Positions 645 through 17,523 of a stretch of DNA of 17,523 nt are shown piece by piece (within the stretch, counting starts at the first letter, position 1; each line of letters starts with the position of its first letter). The notes beneath the pieces were generated by a model. It had not been told where the DNA came from. It did not search any database and saw nothing but the letters and a program-made list of their open reading frames with translations. The stretch covers positions 1-17,523 of IMG/VR virus record IMGVR_UViG_3300026877_000062. One strand, written 5' to 3'. The position numbers and the translations under genes were made by a program.

Positions 645-834
645 CACGTCCCTTTATTGAAGATTACGATTACTTATGTGCAGCACGATGACTATTGATA
701 TGAATTCTTGCTTGCGTGCAAAATATAACTTATTGATCTTATTTGTTGCTTATGTGCGAAGGTAAAATTATTGAGAAATTCCTTTGCTTATGTGCAGACT
801 ACTAATTATTGAAATGATTCCTTGCTTATGTGCA
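645..834 (-). repeat. Orphan TIGR-like dual-repeat guide array (5 units)
   Basis: On the + strand, 13-nt repeats TTRCTTRYGTGCR at 670, 708, 746, 784 and 822 alternate with YTATTGA at 654, 692, 730, 768 and 806. All spacers are 9 nt and the period is exactly 38 nt. The repeats match the 3414-4341 array. Strand is inferred from the main array. Confidence 0.9.
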
Positions 835-2587: not shown

Positions 2588-3028
2588 TTAGAACGTATCT
2601 GTGGACTTCATCAAGTACCTTATAACGAATATCAATGCTACGATTATTAGCACTACTACGAGGATCTGGAATATTGACCCTAAAGTTGGCGCTATTGGTG
2701 AAACGAAGTTGTAGTTGGCAGGGATTTTGACGGCAGTAGTGTTAAAGACGTTAAGGATATAAATGCCGACACCACTTACGATTGATACTGTTACCGCACC
2801 TACGACCAATACTACGATAGCTATTATTATGTATTTAAACTTGTCCTTATAATTATCGTCGTCGTCGGCCATCATTATCGGTAACCTAGTCGCTAGACTC
2901 ATGGCTGCGCTGCTTAGACTAATGAACATCGTCCTTATCGACATTATTACGTTGAGCAGTAGGCTTACTATGAATATTCTTACTACCGGGTTTAGTTGAG
3001 TGGATCTCATTGTAATAAGAGTTAACAT
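2588..3028 (-). CDS. Candidate major capsid protein precursor (two-helix hydrophobic hairpin, spindle-shaped-virus-like)
   Basis: N-terminal leader, then an acidic linker (ADDDDNYKDK), then two long hydrophobic helices joined by a loop with an N-T-T sequon. This is the same layout as fusellovirus VP1 precursors. The call rests on architecture, not on an alignment. Confidence 0.45.
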   Translation of the reverse strand: MLTLITMRSTQLNPVVRIFIVSLLLNVIMSIRTMFISLSSAAMSLATRLPIMMADDDDNYKDKFKYIIIAIVVLVVGAVTVSIVSGVGIYILNVFNTTAVKIPANYNFVSPIAPTLGSIFQILVVVLIIVALIFVIRYLMKSTDTF

Positions 3029-3054: not shown

Positions 3055-3360
3055 CTATATACCTCTAGCTCCGATAACTATTCTATCTTTCTGCAACCTA
3101 TTACTATATAATACAATTATTGAACAATCAGTCCTTATTCTAATTAATTCGTTTTTGATTGTATTGCCTAAATCATCGTTACTGATTGGTAATATAACAA
3201 GAACTTCACTTACATCTTTAGGCAGTATGAGGTTAAAGAACTTCGTATAATCAGAAATTATCCTTAAGCTATAACTTTTAAGGTTGGAAATCTCTCTGCT
3301 TCTTGCTACAGTCATAATGAAGTCTTCGAGGTTTCTAATATCGGCAGAATTAGCTAGCAT
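3055..3360 (-). CDS. Sulfolobales conserved protein, possibly DUF4898-like
   Basis: 101 aa with an AGGAG SD and a TTTTAAAA TATA upstream. ISDYTKFFNLILP resembles my recollection of this family. Confidence 0.5.
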   Translation of the reverse strand: MLANSADIRNLEDFIMTVARSREISNLKSYSLRIISDYTKFFNLILPKDVSEVLVILPISNDDLGNTIKNELIRIRTDCSIIVLYSNRLQKDRIVIGARGI

Positions 3361-3413
3361 AACTCCTTAATTAACATTTTGCTTTTTAAAATTTATGTGT
3401 TCTATTCTTGAGA

Positions 3414-4341
3414 TTACTCGTGTGCAGTTCGCCTGTTATTGAGGTTTTGCCTTACTTATGTGTGCATAAGGTAAATTACCGAGAAATTCCTTTGCTTGTG
3501 TGCAGTTCGTCAATTATTAAATACTTTTGTTGCTTATATGCAAAGGTCGTCTTATCTACTTCCTTTATTGCTTATGTGCAGAGACTGGATTATTGAGATT
3601 TGGTTACCTGCTTATATGCAATCCGTGGATTATTGATTTACCATCTTGCTTATGTGCAATTATCGGCTTATTGACTTCTTATTTTGCTTGTGTGCAACGG
3701 CGTCATTATTGAGTCGATTTTTTGCTTATATGCGATTACTAACTTATTTATAAGATTTGTTGCTCATGTACATTAATAAATTTATCGAGGTGCAATTGGA
3801 TTCTTGTTTAATAACATCCTTTGCTGATGTGCAATCTATTTCTTATTAAGTATTCCTATTGTTGCTTGTTTGCAGCTATACTATTATTGAAATAGTTTCT
3901 TGCTTATGTGCAAGCACTAACTTATTTATAAGATTTTTTGCTTATGTGCATATCCACTATTATTGAAGTTTGCTCTTGCTTGGATGCATATGGTGTGCAA
4001 TGACAGTCTTATTGAATGGATGTTTTGCTGGTGTGCATGAGCGATTTTATTAAAACTCCTTACTGCTTGTATGCAAGTAAACCTTTATTGATGATGTCGT
4101 TTGCTTATGTGCAGAGGATAACTTATTGACTTCCTTGTTTGCTTATATGCATACTTATCTTTATTGAATTACCGAATTGCTTGTGTGCAAATAATATGTT
4201 ATCGATCCTTTCCTTTGCTTGTGTGCAGTCGTTTTTTTATTGAGATATATGGTTGCTTGTGTGCAATAGCGATTTTATTGAATTCTTATCTTGCTTATGT
4301 GCAATGCCTATCTTATCGACACGAACTATTGCTCATGTGCA
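3414..4341 (-). repeat. TIGR-like dual-repeat guide-RNA array (~23 complete units plus 2 damaged junctions)
   Basis: The + strand unit is TTGCTTRTRTGCA-N9-TTATTGA-N9, period 38 nt, with about 26 long-repeat copies (two of them partial). On the - strand it reads TGCAYAYAAGCAA-N9-TCAATAA-N9. It begins 1 nt after the stop codon of the 4343-5374 gene. Confidence 0.93.
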
Positions 4342-4342
4342 G

Positions 4343-5374
4343 TCATTCAATAACTTTTTTCTTCTTAAGCCATTCCACCACCTCATCTCTGTTTATTCCT
4401 AACTCTTCTATTACCTTTTCAAATTTCGCTTTATATTTAGTCGTTTTTATATCTATATAGTAGTCAGTCACAGGACCTATTATAAAGTCCTCATGTTTCC
4501 TTATTACTTCGTATTCCTTCCCTAGCACTACCTTATATGCTTCAGTTAGTGGCACTCCTTCTCTGTAGTGTAATGATATGGCAAAATACTGAGATAGTAA
4601 TAAGGATATTGCTTTCCTGATTGCAGTTCTCTGTACTTTTAGCTTAGGCCAGTCTGGGTGTTTAGATATTACCTCTTCTTTGAAACTTTTTACTATCTTA
4701 GCGTAAACACCCCCAGCTAATATTAAATTGTTTGCCAGAATCCCTAACAGGAACGTTTTTACATTTCTGTTATATTTGACGTTTCTTGCTGCTATACCAA
4801 CTAGTTTAGTGTTATCATTAGGACACAGCCACCCTTGTTCAGAGGGGATAGCAGGTTTTCCATCCGAAGATTCGCCGGCATAGTAATAGTAGTTGCAACT
4901 AGGGCACTGGAACATTACTGCCAATCCAGCATACTTCCTAAACTTGTTAATGTTATACTGGAACTGAGGTGGATATGCGTAAACGATGAGTCTAGCAGCG
5001 TTAGCTGGTCCTATACCTTTGATAAACGCCAGGAAGTTGGTAAACTCTGAGAATTTAGTAACAGTATCAGCTATGAGTCCTTCGACCGTCTCTTGTTGTT
5101 TAAGTAATTCCATGTATCTTTGTACGAGTTCGTCAGACGGTGTTTCCTCAACTACCGTTACTTGTTCACCGCATATAGGACATTTATCACGTTTTTCGTC
5201 TTCCTTCAGTAGAACTGCATGTTTATTTTTACATACAGTATATCTTCTTAGAAAGACCCAATCACTTTTCTCCTTTTTCGCGCCTATACGGTTTCCGAAA
5301 GCCACCCTAATTTTTATCAGATCATCTCTGAACGCTACTAAATCCTTCAAATATATTAGATCATTTTCACTCAT
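4343..5374 (-). CDS. tasA: TIGR-associated (TasA-like) Nop/IS110-related RNA-binding protein, nuclease-less, with two Zn-ribbon insertions
   Basis: It starts with the IS110 coiled-coil motif (LKDLVAFRDDLIKIRVAFGNRI) and contains the Transposase_20/Nop helical motif IKGIGPANAARL...KFRKYAGL. There is no N-terminal DEDD/RuvC domain. Putative metal-binding pairs are CKNKH...CPIC and CPSC...CPND. It directly abuts the dual-spacer array. Confidence 0.82.
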   Translation of the reverse strand: MSENDLIYLKDLVAFRDDLIKIRVAFGNRIGAKKEKSDWVFLRRYTVCKNKHAVLLKEDEKRDKCPICGEQVTVVEETPSDELVQRYMELLKQQETVEGLIADTVTKFSEFTNFLAFIKGIGPANAARLIVYAYPPQFQYNINKFRKYAGLAVMFQCPSCNYYYYAGESSDGKPAIPSEQGWLCPNDNTKLVGIAARNVKYNRNVKTFLLGILANNLILAGGVYAKIVKSFKEEVISKHPDWPKLKVQRTAIRKAISLLLSQYFAISLHYREGVPLTEAYKVVLGKEYEVIRKHEDFIIGPVTDYYIDIKTTKYKAKFEKVIEELGINRDEVVEWLKKKKVIE

Positions 5375-5543
5375 CTTTTTCCTCGCCTCTAAAAATTACT
5401 ATCTTTTTCTCTAGGTCAAGATATGGTTCTAATTCATTCAAAAAAACCGCTACTTTCGCTGGAACTAATATATAATATACCTTTACTTCCTTTCCGTTTT
5501 TCTTTTTTACACTTTTTACGTACCACTTTAACTTGAGTTCCAT
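5367..5543 (-). CDS. Unannotated 58-aa protein, AbrB/SpoVT-like swapped-hairpin DNA-binding candidate
   Basis: Manual translation: MELKLKWYVKSVKKKNGKEVKVYYILVPAKVAVFLNELEPYLDLEKKIVIFRGEEKDE*. Its stop overlaps the tas start (ATGAGTGA). A BRE/TATA lies about 22 nt upstream. Confidence 0.65.
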   Translation of the reverse strand: MELKLKWYVKSVKKKNGKEVKVYYILVPAKVAVFLNELEPYLDLEKKIVIFRGEEKDE

Positions 5544-5564: not shown

Positions 5565-5579
5565 CTTAAAAAGTTTTTT
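5565..5579 (-). promoter_or_regulatory. Archaeal BRE-TATA promoter for the AbrB-like/tas/array operon
   Basis: The - strand reads AAAAAACTTTTTAAG about 22 nt upstream of ATG 5543, the spacing expected for a leaderless transcript. Confidence 0.6.
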
Positions 5580-8956: not shown

Positions 8957-9135
8957 GCAGGATAATAGAGCGACTGTTGGTAGATGAGATGAAGGAGGAG
9001 TGCATAGATTACATCAGCGAAGATGACATCAATTACATTATACTATTCCTGGAAACCGGCGAAAGAAGAAAAAGCAAACTCGTCGAATGCCTAGGTGGTT
9101 ACGATGAGATTAGAAGATTATCAGAGCTATTATAA
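8941..9135 (+). CDS. Small acidic hypothetical protein
   Basis: 64 aa with a GGGTGA SD upstream. Confidence 0.65.
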   Translation: MEEKVSRIIERLLVDEMKEECIDYISEDDINYIILFLETGERRKSKLVECLGGYDEIRRLSELL

Positions 9136-9880
9136 CGTTTTACTTCCGATTTATCAGAAAATTATGGTACCGCAAACCAGGGGAGAGGGGTGGAACGTCC
9201 TATCACGTTTGGCTCACGATTTCCATTACAACCCCCTCGTCTGGTTCATAAGCAACGCTGTCAAACCTAAGGACTATTACACGCACGACGAGGTGATTGT
9301 CTACGGCGAGCCGGGGAGCGGTAAGACTAGTTACGTAATTCAGTCGATGCTTTACGTATATGAGGACGTGAGGGAAGTCAGGAGAAGGGTGGTGTTTGAC
9401 GTTGATGACCTAAAACAGCTACTGGAGAACATTAGGGACGGGCAACGGTATGACGTTGTACTTTTTGACGACCCTTCTGCAATAGGACTGTCTTCGACTT
9501 GGAACATGAGAAGTGCAGCAGAGAAGAGGAAGATGCTTGAGCTCTTTGACGCTTTCGTCTACGTAAAGGATTTTATATCGCTCATAATCTTCACAGTTCC
9601 ACGGCTGATAGGTGTAGCTAAATTCTTTCGCGACATCGCTACATGGAGGGTCCAAGTAAAGAAAGAAGGGAAGGTAATTTTCACAAGGAGGGAAGTGGCG
9701 TCAACACGGTCCGGGGCCCTGAAGGAAATCGACACTCCGGTAATGTTTTACTACGTCAAAAACCTGAGGATGCCCAACGAGATTTGGGACGAAATGATGG
9801 AGAAGAGAAGGAAAATTATCGAGGAAAGGATAGAGAGGTTCAACCGGAACGGGTCGGGGGGTGACGAAAATGATGTTTAA
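9104..9880 (+). CDS. P-loop ATPase, resembling fusellovirus B251-type / Zot-like viral ATPases
   Basis: Walker A GEPGSGKT and Walker B VVLFDD, about 260 aa. ATG 9104 follows a GGTGG SD. Confidence 0.8.
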   Translation: MRLEDYQSYYNVLLPIYQKIMVPQTRGEGWNVLSRLAHDFHYNPLVWFISNAVKPKDYYTHDEVIVYGEPGSGKTSYVIQSMLYVYEDVREVRRRVVFDVDDLKQLLENIRDGQRYDVVLFDDPSAIGLSSTWNMRSAAEKRKMLELFDAFVYVKDFISLIIFTVPRLIGVAKFFRDIATWRVQVKKEGKVIFTRREVASTRSGALKEIDTPVMFYYVKNLRMPNEIWDEMMEKRRKIIEERIERFNRNGSGGDENDV

Positions 9881-10409
9881 GGACTACGTTGAGAAAATAC
9901 TCAAGGGCGAATTTGCCTACAAGAACGGACAACCGCAGCCCGTCACGATCTCGAAGATAATTGCGGAAAGGGAAGGAAAAGAGTACGTCCCTCCGGTTGT
10001 CGAAATACTACCGAAGTCATTCATTAACGCTTTTATCGTTTCAGAAGATGCGAACACGGAAGGGCTGAAAAAGTGGGCGAATAATGTAATGGCCCCTATC
10101 GAAAAGCCATATGTAATGAAGAACCCTAATGCCCTTTTTTTAGGCAATTGGTACATTTACTTGGAGGAGGGGATTAATGTAGGGTATATATATGCAGCAA
10201 TAACTTTTGGTAATGTCCCCGTCTTGCCCTCATTTTTCAGAGATGAGTTCGGTGAGTGCGCAGTATATTACAACGCTGAGTTGATATATCCGCATTTCAG
10301 GTTTTCCCTCGCCGACTTGTATAAAACACTGACTAGCGTTTTCAAGAATGAGAGGCTGTATTTCTCAAAGATTAATTGTTTGCTTGAATCTTCCTCTTTC
10401 TCTCTGTGA
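9870..10409 (+). CDS. Hypothetical protein
   Basis: ORF coupled to the ATPase. A GGGGGTGA SD precedes ATG 9870. Confidence 0.65.
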   Translation: MMFKDYVEKILKGEFAYKNGQPQPVTISKIIAEREGKEYVPPVVEILPKSFINAFIVSEDANTEGLKKWANNVMAPIEKPYVMKNPNALFLGNWYIYLEEGINVGYIYAAITFGNVPVLPSFFRDEFGECAVYYNAELIYPHFRFSLADLYKTLTSVFKNERLYFSKINCLLESSSFSL

Positions 10410-11527: not shown

Positions 11528-11965
11528 TTATTCGGTCTGATCTGAGACATAATAAAATAGTGGCAATTGATCTTTGTTGTTTATTAATAATGTTCTTATA
11601 TTTTCTGGTAGATCGTCCAGTGTCATTTTTTGTTCTTTTCTTTCGTATAGTTCCCATTTTTGCAATTCTTCTAAAGCTCCGTCCTCCTTTAATTGAACGA
11701 CTTTTATTACTATATATGTATTTCCTAAGTTGCTTCTCTTCACACTGTATAGAAGGTACTTAGCTGGGAATAGTAAATATGTTCTTGTCCCATGACTTCC
11801 AGATTTTGTCGTGTGCAACCTTGAACTTATCACCTTGCCACTCTTAAATGAAATTAGTACTGTATCGTCAAAGCCACCCATTCCTGTTCGTCTGTATTCG
11901 AATGACACGACTATTGGTTTGGGTTTGGCTTGGGTTTGGTTTGAAGTTTGGGGCTTTTCACTCAT
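11528..11965 (-). CDS. Hypothetical protein resembling Sulfolobales virus early genes, candidate anti-defence protein
   Basis: Starts MSEKPQ after a GGGGTGA SD; the listed GTG 11977 is part of that SD. It has its own early-type promoter. Confidence 0.7.
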   Translation of the reverse strand: MSEKPQTSNQTQAKPKPIVVSFEYRRTGMGGFDDTVLISFKSGKVISSRLHTTKSGSHGTRTYLLFPAKYLLYSVKRSNLGNTYIVIKVVQLKEDGALEELQKWELYERKEQKMTLDDLPENIRTLLINNKDQLPLFYYVSDQTE

Positions 11966-12152
11966 CTGTTTTTTCACCCCTAAATAAACTATTGTACAAA
12001 CTGATATTTAAACTTTTCTACTAATCAGTTAGCAAACTAATTGTATATTATTTGCAGCAGCTTCTCTGGTATTCTTCCTTTTCTTTTTCCTAACCAGTTG
12101 ACCAAAAAGTTTAAATACTAGTTTTTACATAATTATAATTAGGGGTGAAAAA
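11966..12152. promoter_or_regulatory. Divergent pair of near-identical early promoters
   Basis: - strand: AAAAGTTTAAATATCAGTTTGTACA...TAGGGGTGAAAAAA. + strand: AAAAGTTTAAATACTAGTTTTTACA...TAGGGGTGAAAAAATG. Confidence 0.75.
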
Positions 12153-15241: not shown

Positions 15242-15643
15242 CTATTTATATCTACTTAGATGTGGTCCAACACCAAACGGGATAAACGTTACCATACGAA
15301 AAGGCATCATAGACCGTAACTCCTTCCATACTATCTCTCTACCCCTTACCTCAGTATCTATATAACATTCTACCAACCTCAGACAGACGAGGAGATCTTT
15401 AAGCACCTCCTTAACGCCTTTTTCGTCATTTACAATATGGACATTAAGCGTTATTTTATCCTCTTCTACATTAAGATATTTAATAGGAATATGGACATGG
15501 GGTTTTTTAGCTGCTTTGACTGGGCTGTACACGGCATAAGCACCCAACGTATTTTCGAAAATTAGCAGAGTCCCCGAACTTGTCTGTGCCACACCCGCAA
15601 GTGTCGTATCGCCTATAACCTCTACCTCAACGCCGTGAGTCAT
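15242..15643 (-). CDS. Hypothetical protein
   Basis: 133 aa. Its start overlaps the stop of the large ATPase. Confidence 0.65.
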   Translation of the reverse strand: MTHGVEVEVIGDTTLAGVAQTSSGTLLIFENTLGAYAVYSPVKAAKKPHVHIPIKYLNVEEDKITLNVHIVNDEKGVKEVLKDLLVCLRLVECYIDTEVRGREIVWKELRSMMPFRMVTFIPFGVGPHLSRYK

Positions 15644-17523
15644 TATTTTTTGAATACCCCATCACCTCCGTTTTTATACCCTAAAATGGGGAGGCATTCC
15701 TCAACCTTGTTCACGACGTTAGCTTCTCCCTTAAAGAGCTTCATTAACTGTTCCTCACTCACTTCGTTTCTAGCGTAGAGCTGATAAGATATTGCACCTA
15801 AGGAAAAGCCCATACAATTTTCAAACTCCTCTATCACCGGTTCACCGCTTTTTTCCTCTTCTTTCTTCTCTTCCTCTTTTGCCTCTTCTAACATCACCAG
15901 TAATTTAACACCGTCCTCCGTTATCGACCACAAGTAGACGTTGCCGGGTTTCTCGAACTCTACTAGACCACGGTTGGCTAACCCCATTAATAATTCCTTG
16001 GTCGTTGAAGTGTCAAGACTGTTATCGGACGCAATTTGTGAAGTCTTCAGTTTCTCCGTCCTACGTTCGTGCAAATACTTCAACAACTTTATCTCGACTT
16101 CCGATACTCCGAAGGACGCGATTACAAACTTCCTTAGAAGGTATTTTTTGAACAAGTCCAACGTTTCCTCATCTACCTTGTCCTTGTTCAGCAACATCGC
16201 TAGAATCTGTAGAGCAAATGAAGCAAAATTTGCTATCCTAAGTGACACAGTACGTGAGAACGGCAAAGATGATGTTAACATTTCAAATATACTTTTTGGA
16301 ACGTTAGCGAATCTAGGTGTATAAGTCATCCACGCTAAAAGTGCTAATTTCGTGATATCGTCGTAGTTGAACTCATCTTCGTTTCTATTTGTGTTCTCGT
16401 AAATCTTCTGTATTATTTTTTCGACGTCTTTCTTCTCTCTAATAATAGCCACGGGAATGAAACGTGACAGGATTTGAGTCTTCTGGCTGCTATCAGCTTC
16501 CTCAATGTTAACTACAGACGTTATAACGGACGGTGCATAATCCAGAAATATCTCAACTGGTTCACCATCTACTACAGTAAGTGACCCTCCACGTCCTGAT
16601 GTCATTAACATACTCAGCAACTTTAACGCCCTCAGGTTGGTAATCTCCTGCAAATACAACAATCTCCAGCGTAAGTAGTCAGACCCCTTTTTACCCAAAT
16701 AAACAACACTCTTTGGCGTAACATCAACAACGTTATAATGATAACCATCCGGTATCATGTGCACAATACTCTCAATCGCATGTGACTTTCCTGAGCCCGT
16801 ATCACCTAATACCAGGATACCAATCCTCTTCCTTTTTGTCGTGAACAACATTTTAAACGCCATTAAAGCAAGTAGCTTCACGTCCTCATCACCCACGTGA
16901 TATTCTTCGCTCTTTTCGATAAAGTACCAAATCCCTTTCTGCTTTATCTTCTCCCACAATTCCGGGTAAGCCTTGGCAAAGTATTCGTAGATCTTCACCC
17001 TCTTCTCATTCTTAGACTTCAGTGTTTGTAGCCGTGATTCTATTGACTCAAGTATTTCCTTTATTGACGGCTTGTAATCTGTTATTTTTGCAATCTTTTT
17101 CACTGCATCCTTCAACGAGTTTTCACCGCAAACGTAACCGTTCTTTGAAGGCTTACATTCAATCATTATGTCATTATATCTTATCTGAAAATAATATGCA
17201 GTAAAAATAACAACGTCTTCTCCCTCAAACCTCAATTCGTCTCCGAACGCTGAGAAATCTACAATTACTCTATGTCTACTTGAACCAATTATTTCTAAAT
17301 GTTTCGGATCTTCGTCAAATTTACTTGAATGTGTTTTTTCAACTGACTTTTCCGGCGTTTCCGGCGCAAATAACCTGCCTGTTTCGGTTTTTCCATCTGC
17401 GCCGGGATTTTTTGTTTCCGGCGCAGATTTACGTACTGGTCTAGTATTTTGTAAATCTGCGCCGGGATTAGTATTTTTTATCATTGCGCCGGGTTTAGAA
17501 TTTGTATCATTTACGCCTGGTAA
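15643..17523 (-). CDS. Large P-loop ATPase/helicase (MCM-like AAA+) with winged-helix domain, probable replication protein; probably 5'-truncated
   Basis: Walker A GDTGSGKS, Walker B-like LLYLQE and Arg-finger-like ILSRF. A wHTH-like segment runs KTSQIAS...LANRGLV...WSITEDG. The frame stays open from ATG 17484 to the window edge (LPGVNDTNSKPGA). Confidence 0.75.
   Translation of the reverse strand, partial: LPGVNDTNSKPGAMIKNTNPGADLQNTRPVRKSAPETKNPGADGKTETGRLFAPETPEKSVEKTHSSKFDEDPKHLEIIGSSRHRVIVDFSAFGDELRFEGEDVVIFTAYYFQIRYNDIMIECKPSKNGYVCGENSLKDAVKKIAKITDYKPSIKEILESIESRLQTLKSKNEKRVKIYEYFAKAYPELWEKIKQKGIWYFIEKSEEYHVGDEDVKLLALMAFKMLFTTKRKRIGILVLGDTGSGKSHAIESIVHMIPDGYHYNVVDVTPKSVVYLGKKGSDYLRWRLLYLQEITNLRALKLLSMLMTSGRGGSLTVVDGEPVEIFLDYAPSVITSVVNIEEADSSQKTQILSRFIPVAIIREKKDVEKIIQKIYENTNRNEDEFNYDDITKLALLAWMTYTPRFANVPKSIFEMLTSSLPFSRTVSLRIANFASFALQILAMLLNKDKVDEETLDLFKKYLLRKFVIASFGVSEVEIKLLKYLHERRTEKLKTSQIASDNSLDTSTTKELLMGLANRGLVEFEKPGNVYLWSITEDGVKLLVMLEEAKEEEKKEEEKSGEPVIEEFENCMGFSLGAISYQLYARNEVSEEQLMKLFKGEANVVNKVEECLPILGYKNGGDGVFKK
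17351..17493. repeat. Cluster of CCGGCGCA repeats in alternating orientation, including a 15-bp perfect inverted repeat
   Basis: CCGGCGCA at 17361 and 17418; TGCGCCGG at 17398, 17458 and 17485. CCGGCGCAGATTTAC (17418-17432) pairs with GTAAATCTGCGCCGG (17451-17465). Confidence 0.8.

Follow-up and report, generated by a model that had tools for sequence, protein, structure and literature searches.

TIGR-Tas systems, a compact type of RNA-guided machinery that targets DNA, were described only recently and require no protospacer adjacent motif. TasA, which lacks a fused nuclease, is the commonest form of its effector (Faure et al., PMC12045711). The tasA coding sequence studied here (343 aa plus stop, ATG start) occupies positions 4343..5374 on the minus strand of IMGVR_UViG_3300026877_000062, an IMG/VR contig that was analysed over its whole length of 17,523 nt (hereafter the window). 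Its product is TasA, the nuclease-less TIGR-associated Nop-domain protein and effector of a dual-repeat TIGR-Tas system, encoded by a Sulfolobales virus resembling YNP1 and Acidianus tailed spindle virus (ATSV). Features described below lie on the minus strand unless marked otherwise.

Family, fold and absence of a nuclease

Profile searches revealed TIGR_Tas_endo (NF052498) as the best NCBIfam match (E=3.8e-12, 46.6 bits, profile positions 4-212 of 215), the whole model, which is named for endonuclease forms, being covered, yet by a divergent alignment broken by two insertions. In PHROG, tasA matched phrog_33543 (E=6.7e-210). As a single-sequence search against the PDB returned nothing useful, a profile of the wider clade was required, and it matched TaTasR (9mty, E=3.1e-37) and SpTasH (E=1.1e-18), with IS621 reaching merely 0.08. 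An AlphaFold2 (AF2) model built on the clade alignment was confident, with a predicted local distance difference test score (pLDDT) of 86.3, and Foldseek ranked 9mty TasR first among PDB structures (E=2.4e-5, prob 1.0), followed by SpTasH and then the IS621 recombinase. The protein thus has the Nop-domain fold and the two-helix coiled-coil dimerisation element that define Tas proteins, and neither RuvC nor HNH is fused to its Nop domain, as is typical of TasA.

The initial annotation, made from the letters of the window alone, had described a protein that begins directly at the coiled coil with no DEDD/RuvC and no evident HNH, a description that the structural model and the profile searches bear out. 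The first structural element in the AF2 model is the helix at residues 3-30, with no domain ahead of the coiled coil, and the NCBIfam IS110 profile aligns solely with positions 123-260 of 343, i.e., downstream of its RuvC part. Neither RuvC nor HNH was found in Pfam at E<=10, and NCBIfam gave no nuclease family either.

The protein starts with coiled-coil helix 1 (aa 3-30; 5285..5368, AF2 secondary structure), and coiled-coil helix 2 (aa 81-105; 5060..5134, AF2) aligns with TaTasR from residue 143 on. The first segment of the Nop C-terminal domain follows (aa 106-153; 4916..5059), with the helix-hairpin-helix IKGIGPANAARL and YAGLAV; here G120 and G122 are the sole invariant columns across distant relatives, and aa 115-152 gave a weak match to Pfam Transposase_20. 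The remaining Nop C-terminal helices (aa 197-284; 4523..4786) comprise AF2 helices 203-220, 223-238, 244-272 and 276-284 and align with both TaTasR and SpTasH.

A word-indexed search recovered 71 clusters of relatives at 59-100% identity, all of 337-382 aa besides a few shorter partial matches; most were metagenomic, and a few were labelled as Sulfolobus or Thermofilum metagenome-assembled genomes. An exhaustive hidden Markov model (HMM) search of 1.84 billion representatives yielded 297 relatives. The initial annotation had conceded that homologs all carrying an N-terminal RuvC would make this a truncated IS110; instead, the nearest 50%-identity clusters have at most 36 residues ahead of the coiled coil, and at 337-382 aa the close homologs are all too short to accommodate a nuclease domain. 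Among annotated viruses, tblastn found solely YNP1 gp71 (81%) and ATSV gp16 (79%).

A dual-repeat TIGR array adjoins tasA

The main array (3386..4341), whose first nucleotide is one past the tasA stop, comprises approximately 24 units of 38 nt. Each unit consists of an edge repeat (UGCAYAYAAGCAA, 13 nt), spacer A (9 nt), a loop repeat (UCAAUAA, 7 nt) and spacer B (9 nt), and these four blocks were sharply resolved by the per-position information content. This is a dual-repeat TIGR array of the type described by Faure et al. 2025 (PMC12045711). An array of 38-nt period lies 3' of tasA on the same strand in 12 of 12 IMG/VR loci (one being this contig), and likewise in ATSV and YNP1. The gene upstream of tasA varies between lineages; with the array constant and this gene variable, the conserved module is tasA plus the array and nothing else.

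In the window, the small gene orf58 (5367..5543; phrog_18276, function unassigned) precedes tasA, overlaps its start by 8 nt, and is probably co-transcribed with it. The sequence TTTTTAA (5566..5572), located 23-29 nt upstream of the orf58 ATG, is a possible archaeal TATA-like element. As a conserved partner of tasA, orf58 was rejected: it occupies this place in YNP1-like loci only, with unrelated small open reading frames (ORFs) there in ATSV and in loci L004, L007 and L008.

Spacers and array evolution

The related arrays yielded 175 distinct spacer pairs. Spacer content was largely locus-specific, with few identical units shared between arrays of different viruses (loci L003-L014 and the window). 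Nevertheless, 34 near-identical spacer pairs (<=5/18 differences) were detected between arrays of different viruses vs 1.4 expected from shuffles, indicating descent with point changes; for instance, the window unit at 4075 differs from an ATSV unit at 2 positions. No stronger conservation of spacer B than of spacer A was seen among homologous units (57 vs 52 differences).

A second short TIGR array (645..834), detected by Tandem Repeats Finder (TRF; period 38) and by reading of the sequence, lies some 2.5 kb past the main array, on the strand that carries both, and contains five units built from the edge and loop repeats of the main array; an edge repeat to close it is missing. One of these units, at 796 (spacer A AGGAATTTC, spacer B TTTTACCTT), nearly duplicates the unit at 3504 in the main array. 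Within the main array, the units at 3735-3772 and 3913-3950 are near-duplicates that differ at 3 of 18 spacer positions, and both have the variant loop repeat TAAATAA. This pair suggests that arrays grow when a unit is duplicated and the copies then acquire point changes. The main array also has two irregular junctions, a 49-nt unit with an extra truncated edge repeat (3989-4037) and one of 61 nt whose loop repeat is degenerate (3773-3833), which may be scars of recombination or deletion. In ATSV (L014), a second repeat region annotated as a 'possible viral CRISPR locus' (11703-11992) follows the main TIGR array at a distance of about 1.5 kb; neither TRF at score 40 nor the unit pattern uncovered TIGR-type units in it.

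Two candidate zinc modules at the tip and the wedge

The Nop scaffold of TaTasR has been partitioned into coiled-coil helices K109-D138 and A142-H168, a tip R139-D141, and a wedge G210-K230 (Xu et al., bioRxiv 10.64898/2026.09.09.750476). In the present protein, the tip is filled by module 1 (aa 31-77; 5144..5284), a 47-residue beta module that substitutes for the three residues R139-D141 of TaTasR, with candidate ligands C48, H52, C65 and C68 and AF2 strands at 32-35, 38-41, 43-48, 53-55 and 71-77, i.e., an all-beta prediction. Module 2 (aa 154-196; 4787..4915) lies in the Tas wedge loop, with candidate ligands C157, C160, C184 and D187 and a Tyr-rich strand Y162-Y165 in which Y162, Y164 and Y165 are invariant. 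According to the profile alignment, from which the residue count is derived, it is inserted between D214 and N215 of TaTasR, within the wedge.

The initial annotation had put CKNKH...CPIC inside the coiled-coil region and CPSC...CPND after YAGLAV, at the position of the serine loop of IS110 recombinases. Both placements proved correct. The former lies between the helices at 3-30 and 81-105, and for the latter the IS621 profile alignment stops at chain residue 241, which is S241, the catalytic serine in the loop between Tnp helices 3 and 4 (PMC11208158). A zinc ribbon would fill that loop here, and neither Ser169 nor Ser170 is kept in the wider zinc-ribbon clade, leaving no catalytic serine of the IS110 kind. 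Module 2 is better regarded as an elaboration of the Tas wedge loop than as a trait of IS110.

All eight candidate ligands are invariant in 21 clade members (59-100% identity), and each candidate metal site consists of four such residues on predicted beta strands. The two motifs that the annotation had called Zn ribbons are hence present and invariant, with a revised composition: each combines three Cys with a His or an Asp (C3H at site 1, C3D at site 2), and neither is a four-Cys set. Distant relatives carry CPxC...CPxCG at the second site. Matches to zinc families were weak (rubredoxin-like, LysW, HVO_2753, RNA polymerase subunit P and Nop10; E 0.02-1.5). Across 150 representative relatives, a Cys-rich tip was found in roughly two dozen clusters and a four-Cys wedge in about thirty, some of these without the tip module; neither module is exclusive to this protein.

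In Tas complexes, the wedge loop touches the tigRNA and holds the RNA-DNA duplex apart from the displaced DNA strand. It is plausible that a rigid, Tyr-rich ribbon in the wedge acts as a strand separator. The initial annotation had proposed a gain in thermostability or a surface for a partner as possible roles of the modules. The tip and the wedge have been described as variable points in the literature, chiefly for stem-loop systems, and the two modules appear to be clade-specific elaborations at these two points of the Nop scaffold. Zinc was unmentioned in the primary TIGR-Tas literature searched for the word, and a literature search combining TIGR-Tas with zinc returned reviews only; candidate zinc modules at the tip and wedge in a dual-repeat clade of hyperthermophile viruses are thus a modest detail that was not found in the TIGR-Tas literature searched.

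C-terminal region and the putative RNA-processing dyad

In the alignment, the final Nop segment of TasR and TasH corresponds to residues 276-301, which hold a conserved Tyr/His loop. This CTD5 loop (aa 285-301; 4472..4522) harbors Y288 and H294, a candidate dyad for processing of the precursor tigRNA (pre-tigRNA), both residues being invariant in the 21 clade members. When SpTasH, translated from its phage genome, was aligned to the clade HMM with hmmalign, its Y289 coincided with Y288 and its H296 fell one position past H294. In SpTasH, Y289 and H296 have been reported as metal-independent catalytic residues in pre-tigRNA processing (PMC13421893). Given this invariance and alignment, the array transcript is likely self-processed by the Y288/H294 loop, as judged by homology with SpTasH.

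Beyond this loop, the C-terminal extension (aa 302-343, ~42 aa; 4346..4471) is modelled by AF2 as a low-confidence linker followed by two helices (312-325 and 329-338), and it is conserved within the clade and partly in distant archaeal-type relatives. The helical tail of about 70 aa noted earlier thus exists as extra helical sequence in its last 42 or so residues, those past the Nop domain, with aa 276-301 belonging to the last Nop segment. A Pfam search of the extension alone gave no match, and an impression of a helix-turn-helix in it accordingly found no support there.

Proposed function and alternative explanations

The scaffold and the array are present and the nuclease motif is absent, so the activity of other TasA proteins was assigned to this one: TasA with its array is quite probably an RNA-guided DNA binder by which a target is blocked and not cut. 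This agrees with the initial annotation, which had favoured an RNA-guided DNA binder over a cutter or recombinase, and it finds support in the matches to TasR, TasH and IS621, the array, the missing nuclease and the analogy with MbTasA. FpTasA co-purifies with processed tigRNAs (PMC12045711), and MbTasA binds matched double-stranded DNA (dsDNA) in electrophoretic mobility shift assays without cleaving it and reversibly represses both a reporter and a chromosomal gene (bioRxiv 10.64898/2026.09.09.750476). Structures of PlTasA display the same dimeric scaffold.

We infer the following course of events. The genes orf58 and tasA and the array would be transcribed together, and TasA would dimerise through its coiled coil and bind the edge and loop repeats of the array transcript. 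By homology, the Y288/H294 loop would probably cut this transcript within the edge repeats, giving units of ~38 nt. In the resulting tigRNA, spacer A may pair with one strand of the DNA, and spacer B with the 9 nt next to that site on the opposite strand. The complex, which has no RuvC, HNH or IS110 catalytic apparatus, would then stay bound and block transcription or replication of the target without cutting it. Module 1 would take the place of the three-residue tip, and module 2 would turn the wedge loop into a rigid Tyr-rich ribbon.

Several observations weigh against this interpretation. The NF052498 score, 46.6 bits, falls short of the curated cutoff (100), the array unit is 38 nt long vs the canonical 36, and the loop repeat (UC...UAA) mirrors the edge repeat (UG...CAA) less neatly than in TaTasR. 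H294 is one residue out of register with H296 of SpTasH, and the fourth candidate ligands of the metal sites are a His and an Asp, zinc binding being a prediction. Moreover, no target emerged. Each spacer pair gives two possible 18-nt targets, and both orders were tested; reported 3' overhangs agree with the order in which spacer B comes first and the reverse complement of A second. A search of the window with up to 3 mismatches gave nothing convincing. Against ~330 kb of related viral DNA (the window, 11 IMG/VR loci and the full ATSV and YNP1), 154-175 spacer pairs at <=2 mismatches gave 7-9 matches vs ~6-10 in controls with re-paired A and B spacers. Exact scans of IMG/VR with four window spacer pairs gave 0, 0, 3 and 2 matches, attributed to chance because all were in GC-rich phage or cyanophage-like contigs. 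A scan of a genome collection with one spacer pair common to the window contig and ATSV returned unrelated bacteria only among the matches listed.

Two alternatives keep RNA guidance and change what TasA does with its target. TasA might be the targeting subunit only, with the zinc modules or the C-terminal two-helix extension recruiting a viral or host enzyme such as a nuclease, helicase or methyltransferase. None of the solved TasR and TasH structures contains the tip module, the wedge ribbon or the 42 C-terminal residues, the wedge loop of SpTasH together with a beta hairpin forms the docking surface of its HNH domain, and another group of TasA proteins has been reported in operons with a ParB-like gene (PMC12045711), all of which would suit such a role. 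Yet across lineages no gene is conserved beside tasA, only tasA and the array being constant, and none of the window ORFs that were scanned was recognised as ParB-like, which makes partner recruitment unlikely. TasA might instead act on RNA and serve as a box C/D-like scaffold of viral origin, which matches its spacers to RNAs of the host or the virus and, for example, directs or blocks 2'-O-methylation with host fibrillarin and L7Ae. Archaeal Nop5 likewise combines a Nop domain with a coiled-coil dimer, a tigRNA is similar to a minimal box C/D RNA, and Sulfolobales hosts possess box C/D machinery. Since the protein starts at the coiled coil, however, it is without the N-terminal, fibrillarin-holding domain of Nop5, and its 13- and 7-nt repeats are without box C/D sequences of the kink-turn type; TasR is inactive on RNA substrates and the tested TasA proteins bind dsDNA, so this explanation appears very unlikely.

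The other two alternatives would restore a catalytic past or present to the protein. Many HNH domains are stabilised by zinc, and one zinc module might be a cryptic nuclease, e.g., a degenerate HNH-like fold with which DNA is cut, to which the conserved Asn50 and His52 near the Cys ligands of module 1 would correspond. Module 1, however, is predicted as all-beta without a helix and is therefore not a beta-beta-alpha-metal fold; no HNH was found in Pfam at E<=10 with the whole protein or the module alone, Foldseek gave no nuclease match, and the HNH of TasH lies N-terminal to the coiled coil and not in the tip, so that a hidden nuclease is barely credible. Weak matches to IS110 and transposase profiles could likewise recall a truncated, decaying IS110 transposase that has lost RuvC. 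The full-length ORF is nonetheless kept in 71 clusters with identities of 59-100% and comparable lengths, always with a TIGR array alongside; the TasR profile match (E=3e-37) stands against 0.08 for IS621, and the wider clade shows no conserved catalytic Ser-Gly loop. With the nearest clusters all starting within 36 residues of the coiled coil, the truncated IS110 was excluded and is given next to no probability.

Non-cleaving DNA binding by TasA thus remains the preferred explanation, and the zinc modules could extend it. The tip module, the Tyr-rich wedge and the C-terminal two-helix extension might together adapt this TasA clade to 80 C and actively pry open and clamp DNA or dock a host or viral partner, for a use of TIGR-Tas beyond steric repression, e.g., silencing of host defence or of a rival virus. 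This proposal is doubtful; if it is true, the spacers that these viruses share, and that diverge slowly, would indicate a conserved target in common, possibly the first natural TIGR target to be identified.

Viral setting of the locus

Approximately 25% of the window aligned with Sulfolobales virus YNP1 at 77% nucleotide identity. The context genes comprise an acyltransferase-family fragment at the contig start (81-626, plus strand), a virion structural protein homolog (phrog_16261; 2588-3028, minus strand), a DUF4898 protein (3055-3360, minus strand), and a DnaA-like replication initiator (phrog_5484; 9095-9880, plus strand), all of which are compatible with a contig of a YNP1-like virus. The nucleotide similarity to YNP1 and the types of neighbouring genes therefore place the locus in a virus of Sulfolobales. 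A 27-nt tandem repeat of about three copies (17438-17521) is located at the extreme contig end, within or just past the start of a 613-aa ORF (15643-17484, minus strand).

Significance and comparison with known systems

The dual-repeat TasA clade from hyperthermophile viruses has structured modules, predicted to bind zinc, precisely at the tip and the wedge, and by analogy with characterised TasA proteins it might offer a useful, naturally thermostable and nuclease-free programmable DNA binder of 343 aa. In addition, the dozen or more related viral arrays, with 175 spacer pairs of which some are common by descent, constitute a dataset for the study of TIGR spacer targets and array change. The novelty of the locus is limited, and its distinctness had been overrated at first: the protein is an ortholog of the TasA proteins of ATSV and YNP1, array included, and because these orthologs belong to the set that defines the family, the locus is categorically nothing new.

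ATSV gp16 (YP_009230269) and YNP1 gp71, both annotated as hypothetical, are 79% and 81% identical to TasA over the full length and have the same architecture in 343-345 aa. Their edge and loop repeats are identical to those of the window, and their arrays lie directly 3' of the gene on the same strand; in ATSV, an annotated 915-nt repeat_region (9232-10146) with the same repeat sequences follows gp16. They differ in most of their spacers and in the upstream neighbour, which is a 45-aa ORF in ATSV and an orf58 homolog in YNP1. The paper reporting the discovery of TIGR-Tas (Faure et al. 2025, PMC12045711) cites the ATSV paper as an earlier report of a similarly structured array in an archaeal virus.

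The closest solved structure, by profile and by fold, is TaTasR (PDB 9MTY), a RuvC-bearing Tas nuclease of a Thermoproteota archaeon. Coiled-coil dimerisation helices, the Nop C-terminal domain, a dual-repeat tigRNA with two 9-nt spacers, and a conserved C-terminal H..YIxP loop are common to both. In TaTasR, a RuvC of ~108 aa occupies the N-terminus, the tip has 3 residues and the wedge loop 21, and there is no C-terminal extension, whereas the present TasA has no nuclease, a 47-aa candidate zinc module at the tip, a putative zinc ribbon of ~43 aa in the wedge and 42 extra C-terminal residues. SpTasH (Salicola phage CGphi29; PDB 9W03/9W04) likewise has the Nop core in common with TasA and a Tyr/His processing loop that aligns with Y288/H294, and differs in its N-terminal HNH nuclease, short wedge loop and total spacer length of 16 nt.

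With the IS110/IS621 bridge recombinases, TasA has in common the coiled coil and the Tnp/Nop-like domain, the site of module 2 corresponding to the position of the S241 loop. In contrast to them, it lacks an N-terminal DEDD RuvC-like domain and a conserved catalytic serine, and it has neither a bridge RNA nor transposon ends; an array of many guides accompanies it instead. FpTasA, MbTasA and PlTasA are, like the present protein, solo Nop effectors without a nuclease, and they bind processed tigRNA and target dsDNA as repressors or programmable binders. These three are bacterial or phage proteins, none of them from a hyperthermophile virus, and MbTasA and PlTasA use stem-loop tigRNAs, in contrast to the dual-repeat array that adjoins tasA here.

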